Shown here in pieces: positions 5,168 through 42,578 of a DNA stretch of 64,000 nucleotides (within the stretch, counting starts at the first letter, position 1; each line of letters opens with the position of its first letter). The notes beneath the pieces were generated by a model that made no database searches, was not told the DNA's origin, and saw nothing but the letters and a program-made list of their open reading frames with translations. The position numbers were made by a program, and so were the translations under genes. This stretch comes from Mytilus trossulus (taxonomy: Eukaryota): positions 46,252,001 to 46,316,000 of the forward strand of contig NC_086381.1 in assembly GCF_036588685.1 (NCBI RefSeq), read 5' to 3'.

Positions 5168-8100
5168 TATATATAAAGGGTATATGTAAATGAGACTCAG
5201 AGTGTAAATCCAATTTCTTCTAATTTTGACACTTAAAATGGATATAAAGGTTGGGTAACATTTACTTCTTGACATTTTGCTTCGTATTACGGTGCAAAGC
5301 TAAGATTAGTTTCATTTGATATTCATGCCATCTTGAAATTGTTACAGTAAATATCACAGTTCTGATTTAATTGTTGCCTAATATGAATTGATGTGGCTAT
5401 GCTTCTTTGGAGTTAAATAAGATATAGCATTGGGAACAGACCCTGGAAAGTAGAAGATATTAAATATGGAGGATAGCATGGTTAAAGTATATGATTGCAA
5501 TTTAAGATATCAAATTCTCATCAATAATTAATGCACCATGCTGACGTAAGCTATTAGACTGAGATATCGATGCACTCTGTACCTTTAAAGAAAGGTTAAA
5601 CATGTATCCAAATTAATTTTGTTAAATCAGAAACATGCTGAAAGAAATTTCACTTTAGTAGATAAGATAGATAAGATAATTTTTATTAACCAATCATGGT
5701 GCCCAAAATTTGAGCTATACAATCAAATGAATGAATTACAAAATAAAGCACAGAAAATGATAAGAATGATTAAAGTACATTTAGACAACAAAAAAACAAA
5801 AAAAAACACAAGAATACACATTTACACTAATTAACCTGATATAAACCAAGTTATTGACAAAACATAGTTGTTATGGGTGCCACTGTGACCTGGAGAAATT
5901 ACATAATTCCTCCTATAGTACTAGGTCTATGGGAGACAACTCCTGGTCAATTTTATTTCCTATATATAATATTTTCTATAATTTTCTTTCGTTCTTCAAA
6001 AAGGGAGTGCAATAAATTAGATAAGTTTGAAGTTACAAACAAATCTTCAGATGAAAGAATCCAAACAAAATTCATTTCATCAGATAGATTGTATGTTATC
6101 TGTAACAAAATGATATTATGACAAAAGAAGTGTGTACTAAGTTGTGGATTCAGGGCCATAGAGGATAAAACAGTCTATGTATTTTGCTTCAAATCATAAA
6201 AAAAAACAACACTTTGCCTCCCAACGTTCAGAGGTATTTTTACTATTTTGGACAATAACACCCTCCTTCCCTTTCTCATATCCTCCCCAGCTTCTGTTCA
6301 GTAAAGTATTCAGGTGGATGACATAGTAGTTAATGGGACTCTATTTCACGAGGTTCTGTGAAATATGCAACAGATAATAAATACTGGAACATACTATCCG
6401 CACAACACAGATAAATTTTCACTCCTCTGGAAAAATCTACCTGTGAAATAACATGTCTGGAAAAAAATTACTGGGACAAAGTATCCCCAGGATAGAATTT
6501 CACAGAGGAAGAAATAAACTGATACACATGCATACATTTGTATAAATAATCATTGGAAGCTAGTTGCTAGTATCTAGATAAATCATCATGAATCCAAAAT
6601 GACTAGTAATTACCATGATTACAAATTAAGATTTTAATGCTGTGCCTTCCAGAAAAAAAAACCAGAAAACAACTACAGTAACCATGGTAACTGTATATTC
6701 ATTATTATTCCTTCGATATCGATTTATGTGGATTTCATGCATGGATACCTGGGAACCATAAATTCTTATGTGCAATTTTCATTAAGAATAAAATTAAGAA
6801 TGGAAATGGGGAACGTGTCAAAGAGATAACAACCCCACTATAAAGCAGACAACAACAGAAGGTCACCAACAGGTCTTCAATGCAGCGAGAAATTCCTGCA
6901 CCTAGAGGCGTCTTTCAGCTAGACCCTTAACAAATATATATACTAGTTCAGTGATAATGAATGCCATACCAAACTCCAAATTGTACACAAGAAACTAAAA
7001 TTAAAAATAATACAAGACTAACACAGGCCAGAGGCTCCTGAATTGGGACAGGGGCAAAAATGCGGCGGTGTTAAACATGTTGCAGACATTGGCAAAACCA
7101 CGAAACCAAATTAATATCCATGAAATTGCAATTGTTCCTGAATCCATGAAAACTGGTACCCATGAAAATAAATGAATCCACAGTATTTTGAGTGAATAAT
7201 GAATTGGCTTGAACATGCTTTATGTTATTTCTAATACAAAAAAAGGATCTCTTGAATAAATAATTGCTCTTTTAAAATGGTATTCCATTCACACTGGAAA
7301 GCTATAAAGCTATATATATGTTACAGTAAATAGGTGAAATTAGGAATTACATGTAAACCCTGATGCACTTAGAAAATACAAGTAATTCCTGAAATGGCCC
7401 AGTTATTACCATGATTACCAGTAATTACTAATTTTAAAATGATTTTTTACTCCTATTTACTAACTAATAAAACAATGCTGTAATATGGTCAGCTGATCAA
7501 AAGTCAGGGTAATACTTATATTAAACTATAGAAGATCTGTGAGTGAGCACTCTTAAAAAGTGATTAGACTAAAATGTACCTTTTTGTTATATGATCATTA
7601 GCTACAAGATATATAAAAAATCATTTGTTTTTGTTAAATCATTAATGAAAATGATATAGTGAAATTATAATTCACTTTTAGCAGTCAATCTGGATCTATT
7701 TTACTAAAATAAGCTGAGAAACTGAGTTGTACATGTTGTATGTGTATTTTCAAATTCAGTCAGTCAGTATACTAATTTTATTCTTTCTAAATATGTGCAC
7801 TTTCATTTGATTTATAATTTTTTTTCAAGTTTCATCTTATTTGCATTTTTTTAATGTATTTTCAACTGATAAATACAAATTCAAAAATTAATTGTCTCTT
7901 CACTTAGTTCCCAAAATCCGCAAATTATTAATAATTTCTAAGTTTTTTTTCACATTTTATTCTTGATCTGAAGACATTTTTTTCACCAGATGCAGGAATA
8001 TCTAGCCTATGAATGTCAATTTGGCTACTTGTCCAAATTTTAGTGTTCATGCAGACAATACCTGGCTGTCTGTCTCTGGAAATGATCTAAGTAAAGTTCT

Positions 8101-21100: not shown

Positions 21101-22274
21101 GACCTAATGCCCAAAAATACAATGTTTAATGATCTACATCCGAAAAAATGAGACTCAAAACTAACTTATATGTCCTATAACTAAAAATTCTAATTTGGGT
21201 GATATGAAAAAAGTGGTGGCCCATGTATCTGTCCTTTTTTTTAAACTGGCAGATTGTGATTCAAAATTTATGTGATGGAACTAAACTTGTAGGACTCACT
21301 CATAGATGAATTATATTCTATGTGGTAAAAATGAATTATGATAACATTTTTCAAAAGTTGTTTCTTAGGAAACAGCATCAAACTGCCCTATTAACACAAT
21401 ATTAAGGATATATCTATCAGGAAGCTGTAATCATCAGGAAAATGTTACTTTTTGAGGAAAAAAATGGAATTTAATTTTTATATGCAGAAAATCATGCTAA
21501 GCATGTAAGTGAAAAGACTTTGACTTTATAAACATTTATAATTGTATTCAAACTGTCTGTGATATAAAGTATGAACTGTGTCAATCTTTAATATACAATG
21601 AGAGGAGACAGCAAATTTTAGAACTCATATGACAATTAGGGTTTTTATTTACTGTGAAATTATGATTGAATTTTATGGTTAATTGGGGCCTAAAAAGTTT
21701 TTACTGGACAACCAATACAATTTATTTTTTTAACCTAACATTCCTAACAAAAAGTGAACAAAAATTTATTTTCAATTAAACACATTTTTTCTCTCCATTT
21801 TTTTTAATGAATTTCTATCAAACTTAACTACAAACCGGTACAACTTTCCATTTAAGTCAACACCAAGAAAACATTTTGTTGTAAAACATTATATAGGATT
21901 TTTACAGCAAATATAATTGCAGAAGATTTGTCATTTGTCATATCATTGGTAAACAATTTAGACCATGTCAATCAGTTACTGACTCCAATGATACAAGTTG
22001 ATATGCCATCTTTATATTAAACACAACTTAAATTTACCCTTTCAAAATGACATTAACACTAACTCATGGTTCTGTTTAAGTATACTTTATACTCCAGACC
22101 AATAAAAGTTGAAGTCTCCAATTATTGGTTCATATTTATAAAAGATGATTGCCAACTATCCTCCAATTCAAAGACAACCAGAATTGACCCCAATTGTCAT
22201 GCTATTGAACACAAAAAATATAACTAACAGAGGTAAAATCAAATTAGCCATATAAATACTGGTCCATAATACAC

Positions 22275-25200
22275 TTATTTATGTTTCTTTGTTTCAACAT
22301 GTCCATTGATGGTTGATTTGTCATTAGATATATGACCATTGGCCTTGGAAGATTTAACTGTTCCATTTGATTCTTTCTTGGAGGCCTGAAAAATAAAATA
22401 CAAAAAAGTTTAAGACAAAATTGAATTAAAATGTGAAGATAACGATTAATGAAAAATATCATTTTTGTGTTTACATAATTTACCTTCATTAAGTTTCAGA
22501 AATGATTCAACAGATTACATGCAATAACACTTTTAAAAAAAAACATTTACATAGGAATCATGTTGATTGTGAGATAGGATACAATACAATGTACTACCTT
22601 CTTAATAAATCAGGAATTTGTCCATGGAACGCAGATGATGCCCGGCTTGCATGTAATGTTTTAAAGGGACACAACTTAAGAACTGTTAAAGTGATACTGC
22701 CCAAATTTGTACTTGATCTGTGTTTCGTTGTAATAAGCATTGTGTATATGTTTCATAACATTTAGTTGAGGCAAACTTAAGTTATAGAATGGATATAAAA
22801 ATTCCTCAACAATCAGTAAATGGGGGATAACTCTACAACAATAAAAGTGATGCCACTAATATTTTAACTTTATCTGTGTTTTGTGGTAATAAGCAATTGT
22901 GTATATGACATTTGGTTGAGGCAACTGAATTTAGAAACCAATTTTTCGGTACCAACAGACATACAGAAAGAGAAGGGTAAAACTTAATGCCCCCTCTGCT
23001 ACGGCTGGGGCAAAAAAATGGTCTGATTCACAAAAACCACGACACAAAAACTACACCTAGTTTTTGGTGGGGATTGTGTTGCTCAAACTTAATCTTTCTA
23101 TGTTATTTTGTGTACTATTTTTGTCTCTTGGTCTTTTTTTCTCTTTTAGTCATGGTGTTGAACTTTTTGTTGTTGACTTAGTAAAAAAAAAATGATGAAG
23201 AATTTCTTTCCTTGTATTAAATATCTCTTTCTCAAAATCTATCCCCATATATATTTTCTTTTTTAAAATACAAAATATAAATGGAAATATAATCAGGAAT
23301 TCTTGTTCAATCAAAAATGTAAACAAAAACAAAAACTTTACCTTTCTTCTTACTGATTTGATATATGCATGGAAATAAAAGTTGAGAAACAGGCACAGAA
23401 TGGTGAAGGCATAGAAAACAAGTGCCCACTGCATCCACATTGGAAATTCACATTGTCTGACCAGTGACTGGGCAGCATGGGCAATTCCTACCACAAATTG
23501 GATCTAAATTAAAGAAAACAATAATAAATACAAATAATATTATTACCTTTGACCTTGCTGGCCTCTTTATATATGTCTGGATATAAAAGTTGAGGAACAG
23601 TGCTATTATAGTTGCACCATAACAAAAGCCTGCATACTGCATCCATTTTGGGAAGTCACAATCGAAGTAAAGACTTTGAAGAGTGTAAATCATGCCTACA
23701 TAGAATTGGGTCTAGAAAGAGAAACATAATAATATGTACTTTACAATTGGAGCATTTTTTTTCATGCTTCATGCAAATTATTTCAGAATGTTCATGCTTC
23801 GTACAAAATTTTATAGAGATGCAACTATTTTCCACCTCATGCAGAACATGTTTAAAGATAAAGCTGCAATAGTTTTAGTTCAAGTAAATTTTCTAAGATT
23901 TTGATTTCAAATTATTTTTAAAAATTCCAATTAAACTTAATTATTTGAAAGCAACTCATTAGATCTTTACAACATTTTTCAATGGTAAAATTTATTTTCA
24001 ACAAATAGTTCTATTTTATCTATCAATTTTATATTGCAAAATGATAGATGAGTTAGTCAATGAATACTGTTACATGTGCAGACACAATGTATGTCTTGAG
24101 TGAAAATATTGGGATGTTGAGTAAGAGTGCATGCCAATAAGAAATTATATGGAGACGGATTAATAAAAGTTTTATTCAAACTTTTTTCTGAATCCCATAT
24201 TTGAACTTTATGTAACATTGTAATATTTATCTTGTAATATTTCATTAACAAATACTGTTTAAATTAAGAAGTTACATATTTGATCTTAATTTTAGAATGC
24301 TAGAAATTGTTCAAATAAATAAACCTAATTATTTTCACAGAAAAAAAATCTACATTCTTCATGAATCTATTAAAAAGCTTTGCCAACTTTGTGAATCAAT
24401 TTTCTTTTATTATACTTAATCTTAGTTGACCTTCAAGTCTGCAATAAGTTTAAACCAAAATAAAAAGTAACTACAAGTCAAATTAATTGTAAGTTTTGAA
24501 ACATTTCTTAATTCTCATTCTTAATCTGCAACTCTTTTGATATTAAATCTTATCTTACAAATAAAAGTCATGAACATTTCTGTATTACTCATGATCAATT
24601 TTAAGCATTAGATTTTTTATGAAAAGAGTTGCTCAACTCTTCAAAATTTTAAAAATAAATACTCTTTAGAATCTTTCAAAAGACATTCACTAAAAGCCAG
24701 TGTAAAGATAAACATTTTATCACCTAATCAGGTTAAAATAATTTAGGATCAAATCTAATTTTGTTCTGAGTACAACACCTACAAAAGCTAGTATGTCAAC
24801 ATTTTGCTATTTTGCATTGTACATGTATTTGTTAAAGGTGTTGGTGCAGAAAGATAGACACATACTGAATGTATAAAGATTATATGACAATAGAGGCATC
24901 TTCTTGTTATAGTATGTCTACATGTAAGAAGGCAATATAAAATTTCTGCATACATATTAAGTTTATAAAATAGAAAAAGTTCTATGGAGTCAAGCTTAGT
25001 TCAGACATATCAAAGAATATTTTGGTTTTTTTTACAATCTCTGTAGGACAGGTTTTTTTTTTGTGAATATAAATTTTTGTACTAAACTTTTTTTTTGTGA
25101 ATATTTCTTAGAAATATGAAGAAAGTTTTTTTTTTACAAAATATATGCATCTTAAAAGTATATATAAATAAGTGTTTGCAAATCTATAAATTCATAACGT

Positions 25201-28200
25201 GTCATTCATTGTGTCAAAAACTGCAAATGAAATGGAATAAAGTTAAAATGGGATCACTAAAAAAAATGTTTTTATTCATAAAATAGTGAAGGCAAATTTA
25301 AAAATTCTAACATTTTACAAGTACAAAAATATATATTTGTATATGTGGGAAACACAGTTACAAAGAGCACAAATTTCAGAAACCTACCAATTGCATCATT
25401 GTTAAATATCTTTTCCACCATAAATATTTCTGCATATGTGGCCCAAGGGCAGATAATCCATAATAACCATACATAAGAACATGAATGAAAGAGTTGATCA
25501 TTGCACCAAAGAAAGCTGAAATGAAAGAGAGTAAAATAGATAAATAAGGTGTTTTTTCATGGATATATGGAAGCCTTTTTAAAATATAAATCAATGAAAA
25601 CTATTTTCATGAAATATATATTACATTTTTTTTAAGAGGTTCTGTGCAAAAGTTTGTGTTTTAATGAGGTTGTAAAATAGAAAAGTGTACATGTTTAACA
25701 AGACTTTTCACCAAAGCAGACAAAATATCATCTTCAACATTTCAATTTGCCTAATATCAATTTCTATCAGGCTTTCCACTTTCAGTTGTGAAAGTTGACA
25801 TGATGATGTTAAAGATAAAAATAATGCGATTTCACATGGTGATAAATTTGCATTAGCCTGAAAGCTAACCTTTTCACATCTACATTTAGCTAGTATTTAA
25901 CATAAAACTATTTTCCATTCAGGTATTGTTTACATTTTTATCTTGTAACACTTATAATTAAAGAATACTGTAGATTTCTTATTTCATAGCTACCATTTTT
26001 TGTGGATTGAGGAAAACTTGCATTTTTCGTAGATATTTGATTTCATGTTTTTTTCAAAGTCTGCATGCAAGACTTAAGTGAATTTTTTATTCGTTTCACC
26101 TGTAACAACGAAATCCATGTAATTAGTATCCCATGAATAATAATGAATCCACAGTACCTTAAAACACATGTTATACTTACATTGTCCACCAGCTACCCAT
26201 TTAACTCCAATCCACCATAGGGGAAACATAGAAGCATGATGATATACATGTAAGAAACTAACTTGGTTATTTTTCTTACGTAATACAAAAAATATTGTAT
26301 CTAACATTTCTAAACACTTAGAGAAATAAAACCACCATAATGCCTTGGCTATCTGAAATGAAGAAAAAAGATAAACATTAAAATTTTACTTCTGGTATGG
26401 CTGTAACCAAAAACATAATGGCTGTAATTAAAAACTGTAACCAAAAACATGAGTGCTACTACAACTAATGTGGGTTTTTTTGGCTAAATCTACATTGTCT
26501 GTAAAAGACATCAAAAAGACACATCAAATGATGTTACGTATGCATTTTACAAATTTCATGGTTATATAAATAATAACTTGCTAATTGACATTATGCACTT
26601 TATTAGGACTGATTTTATAAAGAAAAGTTCTCACACAGTACAATTCATCATTGTCAAACTACTAAAAAATATGGAATCATTCAGTTTAAAAGTACCCAAG
26701 TAAATATGGCTGAATTATTTAACAGATGAACTGATAAACAGATGGAAAATGTAAACTAAATGGATAGCTCCTATTCTTATAGAGTTGAATAAAACATAAT
26801 GCATATGTTCCATTTACACTTTTTGTGGTCGTCATCAATGATTTAAAGTTGTTTATGCATTACATTTTTTTATAATTTAATTTTGGATATAACACATCTT
26901 CTGATTGACTGACGTTGTATTGTTTTTCAGCTCATAGACATAATTTTCATGATTTACTCAGGTTTAAAATGGAATTTAGAGTTAAATTATTAGAAATGAC
27001 TGTAATATTTTTTCTGTCTATTCAAATAACATAAAAAAAATATTACAGCCATTCCTTAAATATAAAATTAAATGTGTATAAACTTACTTGTAATTCATTT
27101 TCATCATCTGTGTAAACAACTGTTTGACATGAATAGTTATACCCTGCTTTTGTTGTGTAATAAATAACCTGGAAAAAAATCAAAATACATTTAAATAGAG
27201 CCAATTCAGTATAAATACAAATAAATCTATAGTTTATAATAGCAAAGTTTGTCAGTAGAAAAGTATTTACATACATATTGTAATCTTTAAAAAGAAACAA
27301 ATATATATATAACAATAAACAATTGTTTATAAAATTTTATAAATCATTCTTAACTTTCTCTTGCTTAGCTCAGATATATCCAGACATAAGGTTTAAGCTC
27401 TATGAAATTATATAATTGTTTAAATTTATAAACCAATTTTTCAAGACGTTTCGCCCAATGGCCTTCTTCAGTTCTTTATTATCTATGATATTGCCAGGCA
27501 TCGAAGAAAAAACATGCTTTAAATGTACCATGACTGTACATATGTAAGGTAGTGTTATTATTTTGAAATGAGAAAACCCTCAGACCGACTTTCAGTGCTA
27601 TTGGATTGGCTTGCAAAAGGGAAAAAATAACAGCAGAGTTTTGATTGGTTATAACATGATTTTAGATATTTATCTTATTCTTTTTAATTCATTCAGCTCA
27701 TAATTACCATCTCTGTATTTTTTAAAGGACTTACCTGAGTAAATATATGTAAATTTAATATCACAAGAGCTATGTTGTAGTAAAATAAAAAATTTCCTAA
27801 TTTCACTGGTTCTCGTTTTTCCATAAATTTCATTCCAGCTAAAACTATTATGATATATGCTATTGTTGTTACTAATGTAGGAACAATGCTTTGCATCAAG
27901 AACCAGTCTTTTACTCTAGGATCTGCAATAGATAGAAAACAAATAATAATTAATTCAGTGATATTTATTGTACAAAATTGAATAAAAACTGTAAAATTAA
28001 AAAAAAACTAAATCAATTAATGCTGCAGATAACAACCTAAGTTTTTGGGTGTGTTAATGTGTATGTTGCACTTAATTAGTGGCAAAGAAACTGATCGGCA
28101 TTATGGCCATCAATTTATAAATCTATAAGATTTAAATATCTATGACCATTATATTAAAAAATATTATAACATAGTAAAATCAATAGAAAGTGGTGTAATT

Positions 28201-29969
28201 GCAGATGTGTCAGTTATCAACAAAGGACCATTAAAAAGATCAAATATGAAGACATTTTATTTATTATGTTTATACAGATATCAATGTGCAGGACAATTAT
28301 ATATATAAGTACCTACAGCCAACCTTTAATATACATGCTTACAGATTAGACAGTGTTTTCCCTAATGACTAGGTTTTACACTTGTCATTTTTGGGGCCTT
28401 TTATCTTGCTGTTGGTGTGAGTCAAGACTCTGTATTAAAGACCATACTCTGACCTATGATGGTTTACTTTTACAAATTGTGACTTGAATAAATAGTGGTC
28501 TCATTGGCGCTCATACCACATATTTTTATATTTTTATATATATTAATAATGGGCAATTCTTTTAAATTTTGATCTTTGAATTAAAAGATCCATGTATGGC
28601 AAGCTAGACTAATTATTGATATTTTGTATGAATCATTTATTTGTCAAGTTTCAATGTTTGTTTGTTAAATGTTATCAAGCCTTCAGGGTATATATTATTG
28701 AGCAATTCAAATACCACCATTCAATTCATTAATATTGGAGGATTTTTCCCAATCATCTATGCAATGGGGACAATGTTGAGGCGTATTGTGTGTACAGTTA
28801 GCTGTCTTGTCTAATGTTAATAACTGTATGTTAGTTGTCTGTTGTTTATTATTGTTGCTTTTTGGCTCATTTCCAGATAAATCTTAACTTTTAACTTTTC
28901 ATCATAGTAATCTTAAATATAAGCTTCAGATTTCCAACTGACCAAATTACAATCACAAATAATCACACTTTCTTAATTAGATTACACCATGTTTGTGTTG
29001 CAACAAAACTTAGATTTGAACAAAGATTAAATTTAAAAGGCCATACAAAAAAAGTTTTTTTTGTGTACATAATGTATGTCCATATTAAAAAGCCCATAGT
29101 ACATACACCATGAAGATTTAGCAGACAGTGTATAGAATATCTGACAGTTCACCCACATCTAGTCTAACTTATCTTAACAACAATTCTTTAACAAGTCAAA
29201 TTTTAACCTAAGTTTTTCTTTTACTTTATTTGGCCTTGTGCGTAAAGACAGGAAATAAACTGAATATTACAAAATGTTAAGAGGAAGACATATGGATAAG
29301 TTTTGGGTATTCCATTTCCTTCTTTATTATCAGTAGTGTACTTGTAAATAACCAAAAACAATTAAAATACTTCACATATCAGTGATTTAAACTTTGATAT
29401 ACAAATATGTATCATGTCTGGAGTGTTTAAATGTATTATATCTTAGATAAAGGGCATTTCGCAATTTTTGAAATGCAAATACTGTTAAAGAGAACAAATG
29501 AAAAATAACACTTTATGGTTTAAATTTCTAGCTAGAGGAGGACAATTTTCTCTCTTATTACTCAAATTTACAAATAGTTTAGAAATGAGAAACAAATTAT
29601 GTTTATGCATTCAATAGCCATCTGGTATAAACATGACAAATCAATTTTAATTAATTAATGAATGATAGAAGCATTTATGGAAATAAATTATTCATGGTGA
29701 GATAAAAAAGAAAAAGAAAATATGTTATTATACATATCAAAAATTTATACACAAATAATGTTCCTGGATAAGTATAGAATGAACAGTCAAATAAAAATTG
29801 AGTTTCAATTTCGGTCAGCACAATATGTTATGCATGACATTGCATTATCAAATTTGATCACATGATTTTGTAAATACAGAAACAAGAAAAATCAAGCCTT
29901 ACCTGATATTGACAGAGCCCAGTCATAAAATTCTGATACTTCATAATATTTGTCCTTTATTATATCCAT
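22275..29969 (-). CDS. ELOVL4: Very-long-chain fatty acid elongase ELOVL4; exons 29969-29903, 27922-27735, 27168-27088, 26352-26181, 25515-25388, then either 23711-23547 or 23503-23342, then 22385-22275 (303 or 302 aa)
   Basis: Motifs [39 protein letters not shown] (HxxHH catalytic box), [33 protein letters not shown]-terminal KKHK* di-lysine ER-retrieval signal. All splice phases are consistent. Confidence 0.93.
22608..23018 (-). mobile_element. HINE-like element in the last ELOVL4 intron
   Basis: Two degenerate internal units, GACA-rich tract and terminal TGCCCC..GGGGCA hairpin. Similar elements at ~53082-53402, ~54336-54588 and ~54881-55080. Confidence 0.6.
23342..23503 (-). CDS. ELOVL4: ELOVL4 alternative exon 6b (TM6-TM7 variant B, 54 aa)
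   Basis: aatttAG|ATC...AAG|GTAAAG; [54 protein letters not shown]; phase 0/0. Confidence 0.88.
23547..23711 (-). CDS. ELOVL4: ELOVL4 alternative exon 6a (TM6-TM7 variant A, 55 aa)
   Basis: ttctAG|ACC...AAG|GTAATA; [55 protein letters not shown]; phase 0/0. Confidence 0.88.
25966..26156. mobile_element. TA-flanked MITE (TACTGTGGATTCATT...AATGAATCCACAGTA); copies ~2063-2270, ~6690-7185 (interrupted), ~40820-41037, ~50124-50260
   Basis: Terminal inverted repeats with TA ends and a shared internal TGGATTGAGGAAAACTTG. Confidence 0.65.
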
Positions 29970-32660
29970 GTCTATTTATTTAAAATCTGAAATAAAAACA
30001 ATTAATTTATACATTGCAAAAAGACACCAGTTACTATATACATGTAGTTCAATTTTAAATAACAAAACTATACTTCACCACATTTCTATTTATCTCACTT
30101 TTAAAATAAGTGACACTGGAGGCCAATTACTTAAAATATTTATATCTAACCATGCTAACTGTATTTTTGGAAATATCTGCCTCTAACATATACACACATT
30201 GGTCATTCTTTCTTTACCATGTTTACGTTCAACTATCATCAGCACTTTGTACGTAAGGAACAGAATTTCATTTTTACCTCAAATCATTACATATTCAATC
30301 ATATTTAGCACAATGTCAATGTGATGCACAAAATATTTTTTTGTTATAATCTTTTGAAAAAAATCCAATTTAAAAGGCATTCATATATATTCACTGTAAA
30401 ATGTTCTACTTGCCCTAGAATTTGACAGCTCTTTGTAATCGTATACAAGTATTAGATAAACACAATTAATAATAAATATGAATGGATTCCCACTTTTTAC
30501 AACCCATCATCGATTACCATGGCATGAGTATAAATATATTCAGTTTAAATTACCTTTTCTGATCAAATATAGGTCTTTCCAGTCCTGTGCATCTAGGCTA
30601 ATTAATTCAATATATATAGCTGATCTTTTATTACTTAAAAAAAACAAAAATCAATCACAGTTTAAAACTGTAGAACGAGTTGACACAAGCGAAACCCTGT
30701 TTTGATGTGTTGTAGCAACAGCTAGAATTGTCTTGATTTAGCAATTAGTCTGTTTGGGTTATTTAAATCCCAATTCAATGAGGTGCTTAACTGACAGAAA
30801 GGATTAATCTTGTACTATTTAATAGACCTTTACACATGTAGACAATAGTGATCTTGACCTTGTCATTAATGAAATTAAATACCATATTGATTATGTAATT
30901 GTTGTAGGACAAAAATTAAAAACAAATTTGCAAGATTGTACATTTTGTCACTTTTTTATATTAAATTTGTTTAAAACTTATTTTATTTTTTATAATCATT
31001 TGATTTAATTGATTTACAGATATTTACATGATTTCAGGTGACAACATATGAATAATAAATGTAATTTTACAATTTCTTTAATGGATTATTGTATACATGT
31101 ACAATTTGTACTACATGTAGTAGTTTATTAGGTTATAAACCTTTTGACTTTTACATGTATACCCAACATCTTCTTTATAATGTGTATTCATGAATTTAAA
31201 GGTATAGATATACACATGATACATGTATAGATTTAAAAATAAAGAATAAAAACTAAAAAAAATATATACCATACCAATTAAGAGAACCAAAACTGATAAA
31301 ATGTCCTTGTTCAACTTTGTATTCATAAATTAAAAACCTGAGCTTTTACCCAATATTTATTGACTAATATAAACTTTTTTTCAGGTACAAAATATTTGTA
31401 AGACATTAAGTAATTAAAACATGCATATGGATGCAACCTTTTAAGTCAATAATGTAACCTACACCATTTAAACATTTATATCAAATTTTATGCATATCTT
31501 GATAATGCTACAAAGCAGTGCACTGAGACTTGTAGAATAAAAACTGAGAAAATAGGACAACAAACTGTTGAAGTAATGAGGTTTTTAAATTATTGCATTC
31601 GAGCCTGCATGACAGCATGTATATATAAAAACATCATGGATACCTACATGTAGATTCAAATTATCTATGCCAGACTCACATATATTGTCTGCAAAAGACT
31701 CACCAGTGGCACTAGAATTAAAATTTATCTAAAAAGGCCAAATAAAGTCAAGGAGCATTGAGAACCCAAATTTCTAAAGCCTTGCCAAATTCAGCCAAGA
31801 TAGTCTAGTTCTTGGTGTTGAAAATTCTTAGTTATTTCGAAAAATTCAAAGTTCTGAAAACTGTGAGTTAATTTGTAATTTTGACCAAATTAAATGATAT
31901 AACTCATGATCCTGTCATCACAGAAGTGTTGATTATTGGGCTGGTGACATGTATCTCAGAATTGGGTACCAGGGTAGTGTTGGCATGATAAGCATGTTGC
32001 CTGTTGGATTATGAGTGACAAAGAAAAGTATAACATATATTCTATTAGTCAAAACACTTGACAAATAATTTCAGTTCATTCTGTCAGTAATGATAAAGAG
32101 CTCTTGAGTGTTATAAATAAACATCTGATATCTCATGGGACTATTTGATTACAAAATGTATATATATACATCATGTACATGTACATGATTGTTTATCTTT
32201 ACTCTGTCCTAACATGATTTACACTATGATGTGCAGGGGCGGATCCAGCCATTTTAAAAAGGGGGGAGGGGGGGTTACCAACCCAGGACAAAAAAAAGGG
32301 GGGGGGTCCAATTATATGTCCCCATTCAAATGTATTGATCCCCCCCTGGATCTGCCAATGATGTGGCTAAAATGAAATTGGATACCCTGCATTTATCATG
32401 CATTTCAATAGCATATCAATCATCAAATCACAGACCAACCCCTCCTTAGTAATGAAAAACTATCATTCAGGATTGAACATTTTGTGTAAAAGGTATAATT
32501 TCAAGTTTATAAATAAAGACATTAACTTGAGATTTTCTACACAAAATTTTCAATCTAAAACAGATTAAAGTTTATTCAAAGCATGTTTAACACTTGAAAA
32601 ATACTTTTAATTGAGAAATGAAGAGATGTGTACATGTAGATAAAAGCTCATATGATCATC

Positions 32661-32999
32661 TAGGCCAAAATTTAAAATATGTTTGTTTCCCCTCCCCCAC
32701 CCGGGTGAAAAAATATTTTCCAAAAAAAAATCAAAATTTTTTTTTTTCCAGAAAATAATTTGTTTCCATTTTTGGAAAGTGCTTGAAAGCAGAAGGATTG
32801 ATAATCTAAATAGATACACTCAAATTGTGCACAAACAACTGATAAGTGACCTGGACTGGTCAAGTCAAGCCATTCATGTGACCATGCTATGACAATCACA
32901 TCCAGTTAAAAAAAAAAAAAAAGAACCTGCATTCCTAGTCTGTTTACAAAGGGTAGACCCGGGGGAGGGGAAACAGACATTCTTTTAAATGTGGCCCTA
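32661..32999. mobile_element. TIR MITE (TAGGCC...GGCCTA)
   Basis: ~30-bp imperfect terminal inverted repeats. Confidence 0.6.
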
Positions 33000-33157
33000 T
33001 TGATCTATTCAAACAGTTACCATTTTCTACCCTAAGAATATTTAGACTTCCACAGCTGTATTAGGCAATTTTTTTTAAGGAAATCCAGTCCTCAAATCTC
33101 TTATATTTTGTACCTTTAATAACTATTTGTTCCTCATTCAAGCTTTTGCTGTTTAAC

Positions 33158-33309
33158 CAGTCTGCACCAAAAACTTTTTCAATTACTAGTCCGAAGCAAA
33201 TATTCTGACATTTTTCTTATTGGTCCAAACAAAATTTTGCAAAAACTCACTAGTCCGGATCAAATTTTACTAGTCTGGGGCATCGGACTAGTGGCTCACC
33301 GTGCAGACT
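33158..33309. mobile_element. MITE with CAGTCTGCAC TIR; second copy 43798-43945
   Basis: TIRs plus 6-bp flanking duplications (tttaac/tttaac; tgcatt/ggcatt) and internal ACTAGTCCG repeats. Confidence 0.7.
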
Positions 33310-33817
33310 GTTTAACTGCTGAGTCTTAAGAAGATAAAACACCAATATAACATATACACATGTATTCATAAACTCAAACTTACAAGCAGTTAACTTATTT
33401 AGATACATGTATATATACATTTTAAATGTACATGTAAGAAGATGCATGCTAAGATTGTAAAGCATACATGTCATGTATGTATTAATTAATTTCTATATTA
33501 TTTCAAGACAATCTTTCTATTACATTATCAATAATTTTAAAATTTGGCTTTAACACGAGAACAATTTGGTATGCTCTCTCCAAAATTGTTCCAAAAATAT
33601 ATTGTTGGCAAAAAACAATAATTGAGAATAAACATTTATAAAAGTCATGAACATGATGAATGTAGACCATACTAAATCTATGAACCAGCATTCTGTTAAA
33701 ATATCAATGAAATAAAGCTTGAAGAAATTAAATTATCATTATAATAAACAAGTCTTTATATGGTTAGTGATAGCCAAACTTTACACAGTCAATGTTAGAG
33801 TAACACGGTCTGTATCA

Positions 33818-33912
33818 TAGTCCGAGATTACTCCGACATCCAACAATTGTTTTGCTGTGGGCCCAGCTTGTCAGGCAAAACAGCTGTTGGATGTCAGAGT
33901 AATCTCGGACTA
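33818..33912. mobile_element. 95-bp hairpin MITE
   Basis: Near-perfect palindrome TAGTCCGAGATTACTC...GAGTAATCTCGGACTA flanked by tctgtatca/tctgtgtca. Confidence 0.8.
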
Positions 33913-34450
33913 TCTGTGTCACAGTGTTATTATACTTCCTGGTCCCAATTGGATGAATTGCAGGGCTTAATTATTTGGATTAGGTTAGTAAGTATAATAT
34001 TTTTCCATTAAAAATAATCTCACAACTATCAGAAAAGATGGCATCGGCTAGTCATCACTGATACCATCCTTCCTTGGTATCTTTAACTGTTGATCATATC
34101 AATACTAACAGGTCAGAAAAGCCTTTATATGTTTAGGAACAAATTAATAGGTAACTTTTTCACCTTGCACCCAATTTAGTACAAAGTTCATTCCTTAAAT
34201 AAACAAAACATTAAATCTGTTGATTCAATTAAAATTACTAATTATAGGTACTTTATAAAGAAAACTCAGTTTGCTTAATTAGCAATCATGTTTTTAATCG
34301 ATATTAATTGTGATTATAAGTCACTGAAGTGATCAAACGTGCAGACGCCAGATTCCGGGTGTTGCACCACGGGGGATGGCCAGAGCATATGAAATATTTC
34401 TCGAATTGGTATAGAATGAAAAACTATATGTAAAATAAAAGAAAATGTAC

Positions 34451-34723
34451 CTTCTCTGTTGTAAACAATTGTCAGGAAACCGGGTAACAAGCATGGACTT
34501 ACTGCATGTGTTGCTATAAACAACTAGAAACAAATATACCGGTGAAAGCACCTGCTAGCCAATGAAATCCCCGTTTGCTTAATTATCTTACAAAAATCTT
34601 GCAAGTCAACGTTTCTGATTGGTCAAAATCAATGAAAGTAAATTTAGATTTGTTGAGGATCTCCGGAATAAATCTAATGCAGAGTTTACCAGTTGCTAGA
34701 GAAACAGATTTATTCACCTTCTG
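34451..34723. promoter_or_regulatory. Candidate bidirectional promoter shared by the two ELOVL genes
   Basis: Minus-strand donors at 34502 (GCA|GTAAGT) and 34450 (AAG|GTACAT); plus-strand donor at 34724 (CTG|GTAAGA). CCAAT at 34559-34563 and ATTGG at 34618-34622 lie between them, with local CpG enrichment. Confidence 0.5.
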
Positions 34724-35050
34724 GTAAGAACTGTTTGTGTCATCAATTTAATTATGTGCATTCTCAATACATTGCTACAATTAACAATACTTTATACTTA
34801 TTATTCTAAACAATTAATAACATGTTTGTATGTCTCCACACTTCTGAAAACACTCTGTCTCTGGAAACAGTGGAATAATGGCAATAATCAGTCAGCAAAA
34901 TTATTGGTTTACCATACTGAAAAAAAAATGCAAATATTAACACTTTACTGTAGATCTTCCCACATAGCATTTTCATATATATCATCAGATTTTTTCAATT
35001 TATTTCATTCGATAGCATGGTTCAAACTGACCTTATATTATCTGCTCCGA

Positions 35051-35240
35051 ATACACTTTATATCGCTATTCCTGGCTGACCTGAGAATCTGTCCCGCTTG
35101 AAAAATTGACGTCATACAACAATCACTTTCAATTGTGGCATCAGATATTTTGTATTATGACGTCAAAATTGTTACGGCAACCTGTATACATGTATATGAT
35201 GTCCAGTTATTCATGGTGTACAAATAGCAATAACGTTTAT
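35051..35240. mobile_element. MITE carrying TGACGTCA motifs; second copy ~60935-61099
   Basis: ATACACCTTATC...GATAAGGTGTAT termini (clearest in the second copy) and a shared internal sequence. Confidence 0.65.
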
Positions 35241-35384
35241 AGCCTTTTGCCATCAAGCAACAATCAATTTTTAATTATGGCATAATTTTTTTATGTCAAA
35301 GTTTACCGGAACTTGTTGATTTTATGTAATGGCAGACAAATCCATCCAAGATTCATCAAAATATCCTTGTCATGATTCCTCAGA

Positions 35385-35602
35385 GGTGGTCTCATTGGGG
35401 GGTTCCGATCCCGGATCCCGCTTAGTGTTTTGTCAGATTCCCGTATCCTGCTTACACTATGTACGTAAGCAATTCTCATTTTTTTGCCATTTCCCGGGTC
35501 CCGCAAGACCTCATTTCCCGTTTTCACGACACAATAATTTGAGTTTCACGCTTACGAAAAATCGGCAATCCCGCGTCATGCTTAGACCCCAATGAGACCC
35601 AC
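35385..35602. mobile_element. MITE (GGTCTCATTGGGG...CCCAATGAGACCC); second copy ~61887-62113
   Basis: TIRs, short flanking direct repeats (ctcagag; aatgaa), two similar copies. Confidence 0.75.
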
Positions 35603-35936
35603 CTCAGAGGGCTGAAATAATATCATGAGTTACCATTATTTTGATTTGAAACTTGATTTGTCAAAGTCATTCGATTTTTTTTTTTATCATCATAAAGGAA
35701 ATGTACATTTTATTGTCATGCGCTTATAAGAATGATAGTTAAATACATTTTGCCAAAATTCACAACAAGGATTTCCTGTGTTATTGGTTATATGCAGTTA
35801 ATAAAGGTTTCATTTGGAATTTGAATCAATTAATGTCAGATTAGATGTATTGTTTAGTTTTAAGTTGTTATTCAAAATTTTGTAATTATTGTAAAATTTA
35901 TATTTTTCAATTTTAGATCAATCACCAGTACCGACC

Positions 35937-38900
35937 ATGGGACTGTCATCGTTCATTGATGATTATGATGAAGTTTGGAAGATTAAAATGGGAGGTATGT
36001 CTGTATACAAGTTTTATTCTTACAGTACATGTATCATTAAAGAACAAAACAAAAACAATCCATGAAAACACAGAAATTATATTGAAGTTTGTTAATATAA
36101 TTTTACCTACAGGTATAAAGGAGAAAAGAAAAACACATTTTTTATTATTAACCAACCATTTAACTTCAAGGGGATGTTATGTTTTTTGTCTTTTTTGAGG
36201 CTATCAAGCAAATTAATTTTTCAAATTTTAACCCTATCAGATGTTCAGAATATTTTATTTTGTCATCTGCTTGACCACACACTTTTTTCCCATCAAATTG
36301 GGGTTCAGAATATTTAGAAAAAAATACCCTCTTTTTTTAAGTTAAATGGTTGTTCCCTATAGTGTATAACATTAACAGGGATAATTGAGAGAAAAACGGA
36401 GAAATTCTATATTTTTAGTGATTATATTTTATAGTAAAATAGTAAAGTTCTAAAGAAAAGGACTGCTGCTCTATTTTTTATGGCACATACAAGTAAAAAA
36501 TTTTTTTAGACATTTCATTTCAAATTTTATTTCATTGAATCAGAAGCACATTATAATTTTTAGTTGAAATGAGGAAAAATTACAACATATAATAATACAT
36601 TTTGTAAACCATCAAAGCACATGGTATTGAAGATGAAGGTGCATTCATGGTATTAATTAATGAGACAATACATTTTGTACATCACAACACAGGGGCAGAT
36701 CCAGTCATTTTAAAAAGGGGGGTTCCCAACCCAGGACAAAGGGGGTGTTCCAACTATATGTCCCCATTCAAATGCATTGATAGGCCAAAAAAGAGGGGCT
36801 CCAACCACCAGAACCCCCCTTGGATCTGCCAATGCAGCATAATGTTCAAAACTGATAAATAATACATTAAAAATAATTTATTTTAACTATAATTGTTAGT
36901 CCAATGTTACACTTACAATTTTTGACCCTATCAAATAATATATCATTGGTTGTGTTTTCAGACATAAGAACCCAAGATTGGTTCATGATGACATCACCTA
37001 TACCTACCATTTTTATCATCATGGGTTATCTGCTTTTTGTACATAAGGGACTTCGATGGATGAAAAAACGAGAGGCTTATGATTTAAAAAGAGTTCTACA
37101 AGTTTACAACTTTTGCTTGATATTGGTGAATGCCTATATTTGTTATGAGGTAAGTTTATAGACATGTGCCTTATTGAAAAGTGACTTTTGAATTTCACAA
37201 TATATAACTGTTTTCACCTTTGTATACCGTTGAATGATATCGATGAGTACCCGGTATAAATATTTGCAAACCAAGCATGACATGTAAATAATATGGAAAT
37301 AATCTGACAAATTCTAAATCAATTCATATTTATTTCAATGAACTTACATTGCTCTATCTGCATTGTCAGAGGCAGGAGTGAGTCTTTATAACTTGAGATG
37401 TGGTAGATTGCCAATGAGACAACTATCCATCAGAGACCAAGACTCAACTAAATATCACTGTGTCTGTGGCACAGTATTAATCCTGTTGAGTCATTATTAA
37501 AATCCTCTTTGAGCACCAGCCAAGAAAGTAAAATGCTTTAAGACAACAGGTTCTTCAAGACAAAATTGTGCTTAAGTCTAATCTACTTCTTTTGTTTTTT
37601 TCTTTTTTCTGAAATGTTATGACGATGGCAGTAAATAAAAATAAAATCAAACCAATCTTTACTAAATTTGTGAAAGGGATTAAATATTGATATCATGAAT
37701 TCTGGTTGTTTGACCTTGTATGTATTTGTGTTTTAATTTTCAGTTTTTTGTATCAGCATGGACGAATCCCAAAGTAGATAAATTTTGTGCACCTGTTGAC
37801 AAGTCTAATGATCCTCTCTCTCTTAGGGTAAGTAACTGACAATTTTGTAGTCATGGTAAAGAAAAAGTATGGAATAACAAAAATGTCAATTGACTGATCA
37901 TTCAGAAGTATTTTTAATCTTTGTTCTTTCCACTGTACTTCTCTAAGTTTATGTTTTATCTAGTAATCTCTAAGTTTTAAATATTTTAATGTTACAGTTA
38001 GTGCATTATTCAGTGCAACTTTAATTTTGGCCAGATACTTTAGTGTTAATCTCTCCCATGTTTCCATTAAAATTTTAAAAGTGATGTATTCATAGCATTT
38101 TCCCTTCACATAGATATGACTATTAAAATGAAGGGTTAATAGAAAAAAGTAAGAATATTTTCGCCTCATGTAAATGTATTGGTTTTTTTTGTGTTTTTTA
38201 TTAATTTATAAGGGGAGACAATCTCAAGCAAAATTTATAAGATTTTATTGTTTGACAATATTCCAAAAAAGGGATTGGATAAATGCTCATCCTATATATA
38301 TAAATCCTTTCCCATAGAATGATATTTGACTTTTACATATAACGCTATTCATACATCATAAAGTCTCACATCTAGTAAGGGCAGGGAACTCTTTTGCAAC
38401 TAACAATACCTACATTATACTTCAAAAACATTTAGTATAGTTTGGTGAAGCAAAATTTATGAATAAGCAAGATTGCAGAAGTTGTACAATGAAATTGAGA
38501 TAAGCACACAAGTTGCATTTCTATATATATATATATTTTATACTATAGTAACCATAGTTCTTTTATCACTGATAGAATTATTGGACATTATTTTAAATCT
38601 TTTTTTCAGTTGGCCAATGCAGTATGGTGGTTTTACTTCTCAAAGATCATTGAGTTAATGGATACTGTGAGTATATTTATTGGTAAATAGGATAAGATAG
38701 GAATTATTTGTTCACATCAACTCTGGGTTTTATGATACATATTTAAAAAAATCTCTGAAATATAATTGGATCATTACACCTATAAAAATTAAATCAATTG
38801 GTTGGACTCATTATTGTTTTTATAGTCCAAAAATATTTTATAGGGTTTCAACTTTCAATAGCTGAATGCTTGTTGTACATAATTTAGTTTCATTTTCATC

Positions 38901-41900: not shown

Positions 41901-42578
41901 TTTTTGCAGTCACCAAAAAATAACATTTAGACAAATTTTTTTAAAGTTACAAATATATATTTTATTATTTACCTGATTAAATCTAGATTTGAAAAATTGA
42001 TTCTTATTATAAATGAAGGAAACAGGATAGTTATAAATACAGCAAGAACACATTGTCCTTTGAAGAAAACAGGAGAGAAAATGAAAATCGTTTTTAGATT
42101 TGAGTAGTTATTAAGAATATTAAATGATTTTAAATTCATTGTGAAAAGATTTTTGAAATAAGACTTCTGGAGCCATAGGCTCAACTCTTATTCCATTCAT
42201 TGTAGAAATAGTTACCTGTCAGAACAGTTAATCCCAAGATAGACTCTGAGTTCTACAAAGAGTCAAGGTTTTTTCTTTTTTTTCATCTATTATCAGCTTT
42301 AAATGATCTTCTGAATAATTGCCTTATTAATATGTTTTTATTATCCAACATTTCAGGTACAATTCTGGTGGATAATGTTCCATACAATCTATGCTATTCA
42401 TCTAAACTGTGGCTTCCCAAACAAGTTCAATTGGGCCTTGGTGGTGTACGATTTATCACATATCGTACTGTTTACAAACTTTTACTACCAGACCTACACT
42501 AAGAAGGAAAGAAGACTCAAGTTAGAACAACAGATGCTGGCCAAAGTGGAGGAGATCAAGGGCAATAAAATAAACTAA
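35937..42578 (+). CDS. Second fatty acid elongase, ELOVL4/7/8-like, 283 aa; exons 35937-35994, 36962-37149, 37744-37827, 38610-38666, 40473-40587, 41768-41895, 42357-42578
   Basis: Kozak-like accATGG. Motifs [74 protein letters not shown]. All introns GT-AG; 852 nt in frame. Exact subfamily not assignable by eye. Confidence 0.92.
39510..40436. mobile_element. Long-TIR foldback DNA transposon remnant in an intron of the plus-strand ELOVL
   Basis: TAGTCCAGTCA...TGACTGGACTA termini with ~190-bp imperfect inverted arms (e.g. CACAGAAAAAAGTCCCATAAAATCTAAC vs GTTAGATTTTATGGGACTTTTTCTGTG). Confidence 0.8.
41399..41711 (+). repeat. High-copy interspersed repeat family B (SINE-like); other copies ~1332-1583, 3177-3370, 4672-4752, 9536-9895 (interrupted), 12501-12639, 18120-18686, 28347-28536, 59400-59843
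   Basis: Shared AAGATGTGGTATGATTGCCAATGAGACAAC end motif, found in both orientations. Confidence 0.75.

Follow-up and report, generated by a model that had tools for sequence, protein, structure and literature searches.

Does a single elongase gene of the mussel Mytilus trossulus encode two enzymes, by splicing one or the other of two homologous neighbouring exons into its mRNA? A first-pass annotation, made from the letters of a 64,000-nucleotide stretch of genomic DNA (hereafter the window), had proposed as much, and left open whether such a switch would be wholly new or a conserved molluscan feature. The reading that we favour, and consider likely as a whole, is that the two exons (6a and 6b) arose by an ancient tandem duplication and are used in a mutually exclusive manner, probably for steric reasons, and that the two isoforms are predicted to differ in acyl preference.

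Gene structure and family membership

The gene is an ELOVL4-like fatty-acid elongase of Mytilus, encoded on the minus strand of the window (Table 1). Every exon in the window is an exact substring of the M. trossulus RefSeq protein XP_063398062 (ELOVL4-like isoform X1), with the peptide of exon 1 matching residues 1-22, that of exon 2 matching from residue 24 and that of exon 7 from residue 268; of the two alternatives, 6a matches Mytilus isoform X1 at 100% identity, as 6b does the X2 isoforms of M. edulis and M. galloprovincialis. Exon 1 is further supported by the loose end of a cDNA contig at 27925 that matches 29906-29935, and by a GT donor after 29903. The flanking junctions at 25388 and 22385 had been placed correctly from the letters, as cDNA joints and a splice-site check agree on both. 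The remaining introns measure 566-1980 nt, the predicted proteins have 303 aa (6a form) and 302 aa (6b form), and their shared C-terminus, KKHK, is a KKxx-type motif, with the 3' UTR running on below 22275. The locus is single-copy in the 1.3-Gb assembly, in which 6a is the sole a-type exon.

Table 1. The ELOVL4-like gene in the window, in order of transcription (positions of the window)
Feature	Position	Strand	Length	Remarks
Exon 1, coding part	29903..29969	-	67 nt	ATG at 29969; ends in phase 1
Exon 2	27735..27922	-	188 nt	TM1-TM2; cDNA joints and AG/GT
Exon 3	27088..27168	-	81 nt	joints 27166->27733 (cut +2) and 26352->27088 in 4/4 runs
Exon 4	26181..26352	-	172 nt	histidine box HVYHH, residues 147-151
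Exon 5	25388..25515	-	128 nt	TM5 and start of TM6; ...MMQL, ends in phase 0
Exon 6a (a-type)	23547..23711	-	165 nt	55 aa, residues 213-267
Spacer 6a/6b	23504..23546	-	43 nt	GT...AG; 88% A+T
Exon 6b (b-type)	23342..23503	-	162 nt	54 aa; canonical ELOVL4-like version
Exon 7, coding part	22275..22385	-		36 aa and stop; joints 23546->22384 and 23341->22380

Membership of the ELO family is supported by matches to PF01151 in exon 5 (48 bits, Pfam positions 139-181), 6a (36.6 bits) and 6b (36.3 bits), all above the cut-off of 27, and the domain is present in all full-length relatives. Alignment columns H147, H150, H151, N177, H181, Q211 and Q214 are invariant and include the histidine box (HxxHH, on TM4); Q214 belongs to the QF with which both 6a and 6b begin. 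Models of the two isoforms (pLDDT 77.7 and 78.2) are predicted to adopt the full seven-helix ELOVL fold with its six-helix barrel, and for both the first structural match is ELOVL7 (6Y7F; E 3e-18 and 8e-19, target-normalised TM-score 0.89), to which the sequence match has an E of 3.8e-64. Cys99 in exon 3 aligns with C99 of ELOVL7 and is the disulfide partner of the exon-6 cysteine. Named vertebrate matches among the best 120 are all ELOVL4, and the RefSeq name is ELOVL4-like. According to PMC11286186, which cites Ran 2019, mollusc Elovl4 yielded PUFA up to C34 in yeast.

Exons 6a and 6b exchange the TM6-TM7 segment

The two exons are intact, both in phase 0-0, and each has its own AG/GT (borders ttctag/ACC...AAG/gtaata for 6a and atttag/ATC...AAG/gtaaag for 6b), as the first-pass annotation had it; they are adjacent, similar in length, equal in phase and homologous, in the manner of a mutually exclusive pair. 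Their peptides have 28 identical residues in 55 aligned positions (about 52%) and their nucleotides 89 in 150, and a recount of the first 49 aligned residues returned the 26 identities counted earlier. This resemblance is not due to chance, since each peptide alone matches the same positions of the Pfam ELO profile (PF01151, 183-241) above the curated cut-off, with E values of 4.6e-9 and 5.7e-9. Common to both are QF, C-x-FP-x-WM and LFLNFY, and the peptides also bear out the differences first noticed, namely Tyr in 6a and His in 6b at exon position 9, and WALVFYA versus YAGFCYG. By residue number, 6a carries Tyr221, Gly240, Gly244 and Ile256-Gln257, and 6b His221, Leu240, Ala244 and Phe256-His257.

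Alignment and models place the exchanged segment where it had been proposed to lie, in the TM6-TM7 region: the cassette encodes TM6 in its C-terminal two-thirds, TM7, and the luminal loop that bears the disulfide cysteine. The catalytic half is indeed common to both isoforms, which have TM1-5 in common; HVYHH is encoded in exon 4, outside the cassette.

Each transcript carries one of the two exons

Evidence of splicing comes from contigs of four public runs (X1, X6, X8 and X15) whose type is recorded as 'RNA?'; they are cDNA, because six GT-AG introns are skipped in them. Exon 5 is a shared donor, joined to 6a (25388->23711) at depths of 647 in X1, 10.2 in X6, 3.5 in X8 and 0 in X15, and to 6b (25388->23503) at depths of 302, 12.5, 3.7 and 58, respectively. 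In X6 and X8 individual unitigs contain the exon-7 flank, either 6b or 6a, and the exon-5 flank in a single piece, and in X1 the depths of 6a and 6b sum to ~949, compared with 898 for the constitutive exons. The earlier proposal that both exons are used holds: each sits directly between exons 5 and 7 in cDNA contigs, and splicing of both is seen in three runs from three studies. The a:b ratio differs among samples, from ~2:1 down to b alone, in contig depth, which reflects expression poorly, and in samples that carry no tissue label; it is the one hint that the choice of exon may respond to tissue or temperature.

Among the joints listed (45 further joints lie outside this set, and contigs drop rare forms), none connects 6a with 6b, and none of those listed is the exon-skipping joint 25388->22385. 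Within these joints, and at the resolution of contigs, each mature mRNA holds one exon of the pair. Exons 6a and 6b are thus real mutually exclusive exons, exactly one per mRNA, while low-level mRNAs with both exons or with neither may occur, given that contigs drop rare forms. Models joining both exons have been annotated elsewhere (Crassostrea virginica X3, Nucella, Tegillarca and Biomphalaria pfeifferi X1), and these are either annotation artefacts or genuine cases of double inclusion in genes with a longer spacer.

A probable steric basis for exclusion

Exclusion is most likely steric, a reading suggested by a spacer of just 43 nt. The single yTnAy branch-point candidate at the usual distance lies 22 nt upstream of 6b, which leaves ~21 nt between it and the donor of 6a; with the branch site this close, the spacer would not be removable as an intron, and recognition of either exon would block the other. 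Nonsense-mediated decay cannot police double inclusion here, because the lengths of 6a and 6b are both multiples of three. Some animals do splice introns of 40-50 nt.

Alternatively, exclusion might be enforced by intronic RNA pairings that compete with one another (docking and selector sites) or by tissue-specific splicing factors, which we think unlikely. The varying a:b ratio does imply some regulation on top of any steric block, and an open-reading-frame fragment of a relative (P0006) suggests a longer spacer of ~64 nt (a rough estimate, by eye). However, an inverted-repeat scan of 22386-25387 for docking and selector pairs returned just A+T-rich, low-complexity pairs of 71-94% complementarity, with no arm adjoining both exons, and a second fragment with a gastropod-like b exon (P0003) implies a spacer of ~30 nt (by eye). 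Together with the 43-nt spacer and the closeness of the branch candidate to the 6a donor, these observations speak against this alternative. Exons 2 and 3 of alpha-tropomyosin are the classic example of mutually exclusive exons enforced sterically (Smith and Nadal-Ginard, 1989). The mussel exons resemble them in being adjacent, homologous and equal in phase, with the downstream branch site probably too near the upstream donor.

Conservation and age of the exon pair

That the pair might be a conserved molluscan feature is borne out by its presence across bivalves and gastropods: at least 10 species of the former and 6 of the latter have it, as does the annelid Owenia. In Sinonovacula, Dreissena, Saccostrea and Owenia the members of an isoform pair are identical outside ~residues 213-268, and a pectinid pair has one differing position there. 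It is accordingly very improbable that one exon is decaying or unused, or that the two forms stem from separate gene copies or from a fault of the assembly. In X15 6b alone was assembled, but both exons are spliced in the three other runs, both remain intact, with conservation that extends over classes and phyla, the mussel has a single genomic locus, and the flanks of isoform pairs are identical or nearly so in five species.

In a tree of the exons, a-type exons form one clade (support 100/98), as do mollusc b-type exons (95/87); an AU test that grouped all gastropod exons in a single clade gave p 0.067, which is not significant. Within molluscs, identity averages 62.8% for a against a and 71.2% for b against b, compared with 42-52% for a against b inside one species. 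Three positions are diagnostic of type, and all three are invariant across bivalves, gastropods and Owenia: at residue 221 (exon position 9) the a-type exons have Y (11/11) and the b-type exons H (11/11), at residue 240 (P+7) they have G/S (11/11) and L/V (11/11), respectively, and residue 244 is G in a and A in b. Region-restricted protein searches with a-type queries from Mytilus (8 candidates) and Pomacea (4 candidates) gave too few candidates to establish that cephalopods, chitons, brachiopods and other annelids lack the a-type exon; b-type forms alone were seen for these groups.

It is tempting to date the cassette switch to before the mollusc/annelid split (>500 million years), in which case many lophotrochozoans would have two acyl pockets per gene, and we put this at slightly short of an even chance. 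Tyr221 and Gly240 would have become fixed in one copy after duplication, with His221 and Leu240 retained in the other.

A predicted difference in acyl preference

The two isoforms are predicted from their residues to differ in acyl-chain preference, given Tyr221 and Gly240 in 6a and the alignment of residue 240 with I242 of human ELOVL7, a residue that lines the acyl pocket (preprint 10.1101/2020.11.11.378570). The 6b form is the canonical one (His221, Leu240) and the 6a form a specialised one, with Tyr221 and a small glycine at the pocket-aligned site.

A less favoured explanation, which we regard as improbable, is that the exons are exclusive while the isoforms are biochemically equivalent, the pair being kept for regulation or by neutral subfunctionalisation; isoform-specific stability, partners and localisation are among the regulatory reasons that could be named. 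Both isoform models fold identically, and those catalytic and CoA-contact positions of ELOVL7 that fall inside the cassette (the equivalents of Q214, C231 and F253) are kept in both, as equivalence would have it. On the other hand, the type-specific residues at 221, 240 and 244 are invariant in bivalves, gastropods and Owenia, one of them at the pocket-aligned site, and a mutation in the same segment of mammalian ELOVL4, W246G, selectively impairs synthesis of saturated, not polyunsaturated, very-long-chain products (PMC11489227). This tryptophan is that of FPxWM, inside the cassette (numbering checked). In yeast, a 'caliper' lysine on TM6 of Fen1/Sur4 reportedly determines chain length (Denic and Weissman, 2007). 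The yeast lysine and W246G both concern the TM6-loop-TM7 segment, and chain length or substrate class, but they are point differences between paralogues or in disease alleles, whereas in the mussel the segment is exchanged as a spliced cassette. The prediction that the isoforms differ in acyl preference remains the one we favour.

Known isoforms and related gene pairs

The option that the isoforms were wholly new is excluded. RefSeq lists isoforms X1 and X2, under the name 'very long chain fatty acid elongase 4-like', for M. trossulus, M. edulis, M. galloprovincialis and M. californianus, and likewise for oysters, Dreissena, Mya, Argopecten, Pomacea, Littorina and other molluscs; these entries describe the same two products, without a statement on exon architecture, age, spacer or diagnostic residues. 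X1 and X2 of Crassostrea gigas were listed by 2015 (PMC4550275), where each was handled as a sequence of its own ('C. gigas 6' and 'C. gigas 7') and no exon structure was given.

The mention in the first-pass annotation of Elovl4 a/b isoforms in a razor clam proved right, as QCF41171 and QCF41172 differ within residues 217-266 and nowhere else. Ran et al. (2019), whose study includes yeast assays of the clam isoforms, cloned these as Elovl4_a and Elovl4_b of Sinonovacula constricta. They represent the same family and the same cassette, with the letters inverted relative to ours: the variable part of Elovl4_a (QCF41171) is orthologous to 6b and is the His, b-type exon, and that of Elovl4_b (QCF41172) is orthologous to 6a and is the Tyr, a-type exon. 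In the open literature (Ran et al. 2019 falling outside this search) we found no paper that calls the exon pair mutually exclusive. The isoforms are thus already known at the level of annotation and cDNA, and the deep age and diagnostic residues are modest additions.

Teleosts (elovl4a/elovl4b) and Platynereis (EloB/EloC) also have two ELOVL4 enzymes, with partly different substrates and tissues (PMC11286186). Unlike these pairs, which are separate genes that arose by whole-genome or local duplication, the mussel has just one exon duplicated and the choice made by splicing. The clam 'Elovl4a/b' are accordingly not paralogues, unlike Elovl4a/b of fish.

Implications for elongase surveys

As food, bivalves are a major source of long-chain omega-3 fatty acids, and they also make unusual fatty acids. 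Their elongases are usually studied by counting genes, but a single gene here supplies two enzymes, so that surveys and expression studies (qPCR, gene-level RNA-seq) that are blind to the cassette merge two activities. The conserved Tyr/His and Gly/Leu pairs are natural experiments on substrate choice in ELOVL enzymes, and they lie in the same segment as the human ataxia mutation W246G, which alters substrate class.

In a scan of metagenome contigs, a mollusc-type a-b tandem was present at 0 of 47 loci. Exchange of TM6-TM7 exons may be a recurrent route to a wider elongase repertoire in animals; compare an unrelated metagenome contig (L010), on which three alternative terminal TM6-7 exons stand in tandem and carry Phe, Tyr or His where the mussel exons have Tyr or His.

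Gene structure and the exon pair

A gene model assembled from open reading frame pieces, splice sites and cDNA joints places an ELOVL4-like elongase on the minus strand, with two homologous exons, 6a and 6b, between exons 5 and 7. Its introns measure, in order, 1980, 566, 735, 665, 1676, 43 (the 6a-6b spacer) and 956 nt, and the coding sequence amounts to 303 residues with 6a or 302 with 6b. Testing the exon peptides one by one as exact, ordered substrings of database proteins, we found all seven exact in XP_063398062 (P0279), the M. trossulus 'very long chain fatty acid elongase 4-like isoform X1', and the 6b peptide, likewise from residue 213, in the X2 isoforms that M. edulis and M. galloprovincialis have.

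The first-pass annotation had noted an intact, homologous exon pair, and this is confirmed: its count of 26 identities in the first 49 residues was reproduced by alignment, the full peptides share 28 of 55 aligned residues, and QF, C-x-FP-x-WM and LFLNFY are retained in both. Each exon alone passes the curated cut-off of the Pfam ELO family (PF01151, positions 183-241; E 4.6e-9 for 6a and 5.7e-9 for 6b). Of the first 50 codons the two DNA sequences have 15 in common, while 11 differ synonymously and 24 encode different amino acids, a comparison that points to an old duplicate with its protein under selection. The 370-nt stretch holding both exons occurs once in the 1.3-Gb assembly, in which we found no further a-type exon, the type to which 6a belongs (next best was 6b at 52%, paralogues reaching at most 44%). 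The head-to-head neighbour of this gene is an ELO paralogue (window 29903-35994); its exon-6 equivalent (42360-42518, plus strand; genome assembly position G000:C9:46294360-46294518) is 38% identical to 6a, and no tandem exon pair was seen in it.

Features of the ELOVL4-like gene and related loci (window positions unless a locus or residue is named; residues numbered on the Mytilus protein, counts from 11 species per type)
Feature	Position	Strand	Details
Exon 1	29969-29903	minus	
Exon 2	27922-27735	minus	
Exon 3	27168-27088	minus	
Exon 4	26352-26181	minus	carries HVYHH
Exon 5	25515-25388	minus	
Exon 6a	23711-23547	minus	165 nt; open frame; pyrimidine tract and AG before, GT after; phase 0-0
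Exon 6b	23503-23342	minus	162 nt; open frame; pyrimidine tract and AG before, GT after; phase 0-0
Exon 7	22385-22275	minus	C-terminus KKHK, then stop
Joint, exon 5 to 6a	25388->23711		depth in runs X1 647, X6 10.2, X8 3.5, X15 0
Joint, exon 5 to 6b	25388->23503		depth in runs X1 302, X6 12.5, X8 3.7, X15 58
TM6-TM7 exons, three in tandem	L010:1457-1729, 3001-3162, 5259-5471		metagenome contig Ga0126339_10004307; animal; GC 35%
Additional segments listed beside them	L041:2-220, 2865-2978		metagenome contig locus
Type-specific residue	221		a-type Tyr, b-type His; 11/11 each
Type-specific residue	240		a-type Gly/Ser, b-type Leu/Val; 11/11 each
Type-specific residue	244		a-type Gly; b-type Ala (9) or Gly (2)
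Type-specific residues	256-257		a-type mostly Ile-Gln, b-type mostly Phe-His
Type-specific residue	229 (TM6 luminal end)		a-type acidic in 10/11, b-type mostly Arg/Lys/Gln

Transcripts carry one exon or the other

Contigs from four public runs (X1, X6, X8 and X15, from four studies) were placed on window 22100-28050. The run type is recorded merely as 'RNA?'; the contigs are spliced cDNA, because they skip six introns whose ends are CT..AC on the plus strand and thus GT..AG on the minus strand. Besides the joints from exon 5 to either alternative, joints from 6a (23546->22384) and from 6b (23341->22380) to exon 7 were found, and among the best 15 of 60 joints there was neither a 6a-to-6b nor an exon-5-to-exon-7 joint. 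Single unitigs in X6 (records 15 and 16) and X8 (records 21 and 22) run from 25-33 nt of exon 7 through the whole of 6b or 6a into 29 nt of exon 5, the bubble expected from mutually exclusive exons, which implies that these assemblies have no branch at the 6a 3' end. In run X1 the depths of 6a and 6b total ~949, compared with a depth of 898 in the constitutive exons, and a contig of X15 has the order exon 7-6b-5-4. The earlier structural interpretation, a mutually exclusive pair, is supported by transcripts as well as by deep conservation. The share of 6a is ~68% in X1, 45-49% in X6 and X8 and at most 5% in X15, which only suggests a regulated choice, contig depth being a rough measure.

Several minor features accompany these contigs. 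In X1, ACAG replaces the first four bases past the exon-7 acceptor (window 22381-22384), which divides the joints of 6a and 6b to exon 7 into two variants, and in three runs 23658 A>G in 6a is a synonymous change (TGT>TGC) at the conserved Cys230 codon. Dozens of unrelated contigs from all four runs are stacked on window 22697-22895, 26019-26156 and 26944-27023 (introns 6, 4 and 3). Their summed depth is very high, many of their ends are loose and their likeness is 90-95%; probably they stem from short interspersed repeats, copies of which are transcribed from other sites in the genome.

How exclusivity may be enforced

Nonsense-mediated decay is unable to select between the exons, because both are multiples of three and inclusion of both or neither stays in frame. 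The 43-nt spacer is 88% A+T and more than 13 times shorter than every other intron of the gene, and the sole yTnAy match at the usual distance from the 6b acceptor puts the A 22 nt upstream of 6b and ~21 nt from the 6a donor. Exons 2 and 3 of alpha-tropomyosin are a classic steric mutually exclusive pair, and the geometry here is like theirs; a spacer this short may exclude joint use of 6a and 6b, and enforcement is probably steric. No convincing docking/selector pairing was found around the two exons.

Some annotated models do unite both exons, a then b, in proteins of 328-412 residues: Crassostrea virginica isoform X3 (P0283, 348 aa), Nucella (P0160), Tegillarca (P0291/P0275), Biomphalaria pfeifferi X1 (P0163), Sinanodonta (P0156) and Elysia (P0162). 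A nine-helix protein would result, and these are likely gene-model artefacts; if real, exclusivity would not be absolute where the spacer is longer.

Conservation and age

A profile of both exons retrieved 571 relatives from 1.84 billion representative proteins, among them genomic ORF fragments in which one a-like exon and one b-like exon stand in tandem (P0001, P0003). A second profile search, of named proteins, showed 'ELOVL4-like' X1/X2 isoform pairs in many molluscs. Exon-6 equivalents excised from 66 named proteins place the a-type in 10 bivalve genera (Mytilus, Tegillarca, Crassostrea-like, Saccostrea, Pinctada, a pectinid, Sinanodonta, Dreissena, Sinonovacula and Mya), in 6 gastropods (Pomacea, Littorina, Nucella, Elysia, Biomphalaria and Lymnaea) and in the annelid Owenia fusiformis. 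The isoform pairs of Sinonovacula, Dreissena, Saccostrea and Owenia do not differ outside ~213-268 (in Owenia, by its own numbering, up to 287), and that of the pectinid differs there at just one position.

A maximum-likelihood tree built on 54 columns unites the 19 a-type exons in a single clade (support 100/98) and the mollusc b-type exons in a separate one (95/87). A constraint uniting both Owenia exons lowers the log-likelihood by 12.2 units (AU p = 0.013), and one uniting all gastropod exons lowers it by 27.8 (AU p = 0.067), figures to be read with the few columns, the long branch of the Owenia a exon and the definition of groups once the tree was known. Mollusc a-type exons are on average 62.8% identical to each other and b-type exons 71.2%, as against 42-52% for a with b inside one species; neither exon shows decay. 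The exon comparisons are evidence that the duplication is older than the bivalve-gastropod split, and it probably predates the mollusc-annelid split.

Single exons of echinoderms and vertebrates have His221 and Leu/Val240 as in the b-type, those of echinoderms also Gly244 and Ile256 as in the a-type, and both are roughly equidistant from the two types. Given this mixture, a and b both diverged from an intermediate ancestor, with the b-type remaining nearer the canonical form.

Position of the cassette in the enzyme

Isoform X1 aligns with human ELOVL7 (PDB 6Y7F) over residues 13-279 (E 3.8e-64) with almost equal numbering. In ELOVL7 the malonyl-carboxylate pocket is lined by Q211 and Q214, C231 forms a disulfide with C99, W158, G161, G170, F238 and I242 line the closed end of the acyl pocket, and F253 contacts cysteamine (structure preprint 10.1101/2020.11.11.378570). 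The segment encoded by 6a or 6b begins exactly at the equivalent of Q214-F215, retained in both, and both keep the C231 equivalent, whose partner Cys99 lies in exon 3, and the F238 equivalent, the Trp of FPxWM. Residue 240, the diagnostic Gly/Leu position, corresponds to I242, the register here being anchored by an invariant Tyr three residues later. AlphaFold2 models of an a isoform (P0279) and a b isoform (P0276) are of equal confidence (mean pLDDT 77.7 vs 78.2, pTM 0.75 vs 0.74); in each, TM6 spans 204-227 and TM7 starts at 234, and for both the top match is 6Y7F (TM-score 0.89 normalised to target).

The Trp of FPxWM is W246 of mammalian ELOVL4 (numbering checked), and the ataxia mutation W246G reportedly impairs very-long-chain saturated but not polyunsaturated synthesis (PMC11489227); one substitution in this part of the protein can therefore change the class of substrate. 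Leu240 to Gly together with His221 to Tyr would reshape the acyl pocket, and through it the a isoform would differ from b in chain-length or unsaturation preference. We infer on good grounds that the pair acts as the 'lipid switch' suggested in the first-pass annotation.

Relation to earlier descriptions

The isoforms themselves are already known, from annotation in M. trossulus itself and cDNAs in a clam; RefSeq has X1/X2 entries from four Mytilus species and from many further molluscs. In GenBank the razor clam (Ran et al. 2019) 'Elovl4_a' (QCF41171) is b-type and 'Elovl4_b' (QCF41172) a-type, so that the clam letters are inverted relative to ours, and Ruditapes 'elongase 4a' is b-type too. 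This is a naming trap (database proteins P0175, P0192 and P0172): Sinonovacula 'Elovl4_a' and Ruditapes '4a' hold the His-containing canonical exon, i.e. 6b. The clam forms are moreover splice isoforms, whereas fish elovl4a and elovl4b, with the same letters, are separate genes. For C. gigas, a 2015 table gives the pair as two sequences and shows no exon structure (PMC4550275). According to a 2024 paper (PMC11286186), invertebrates 'usually have one sole Elovl4', and mollusc Elovl4 in yeast yielded PUFA up to C34. In the open literature we did not find the pair described as mutually exclusive exons, dated or given diagnostic residues. Our addition is modest: the explicit exon architecture with its 43-nt spacer, evidence that the duplication is older than the bivalve-gastropod and, probably, the mollusc-annelid split, and the invariant Tyr/His and Gly/Leu pairs, one at a pocket-lining position.

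A similar arrangement occurs on the animal metagenome contig at L010, where each of three homologous TM6-TM7 exons in tandem reads into its own stop codon with no other ELO exon in between. The first two share the acceptor ...acacag/ATT CAG TTT (slash marking the boundary), the third has different upstream sequence, and all three look like alternative terminal exons. Their position 9 is Phe, Tyr and His in turn, echoing the Tyr/His swap of the mussel 6a and 6b.
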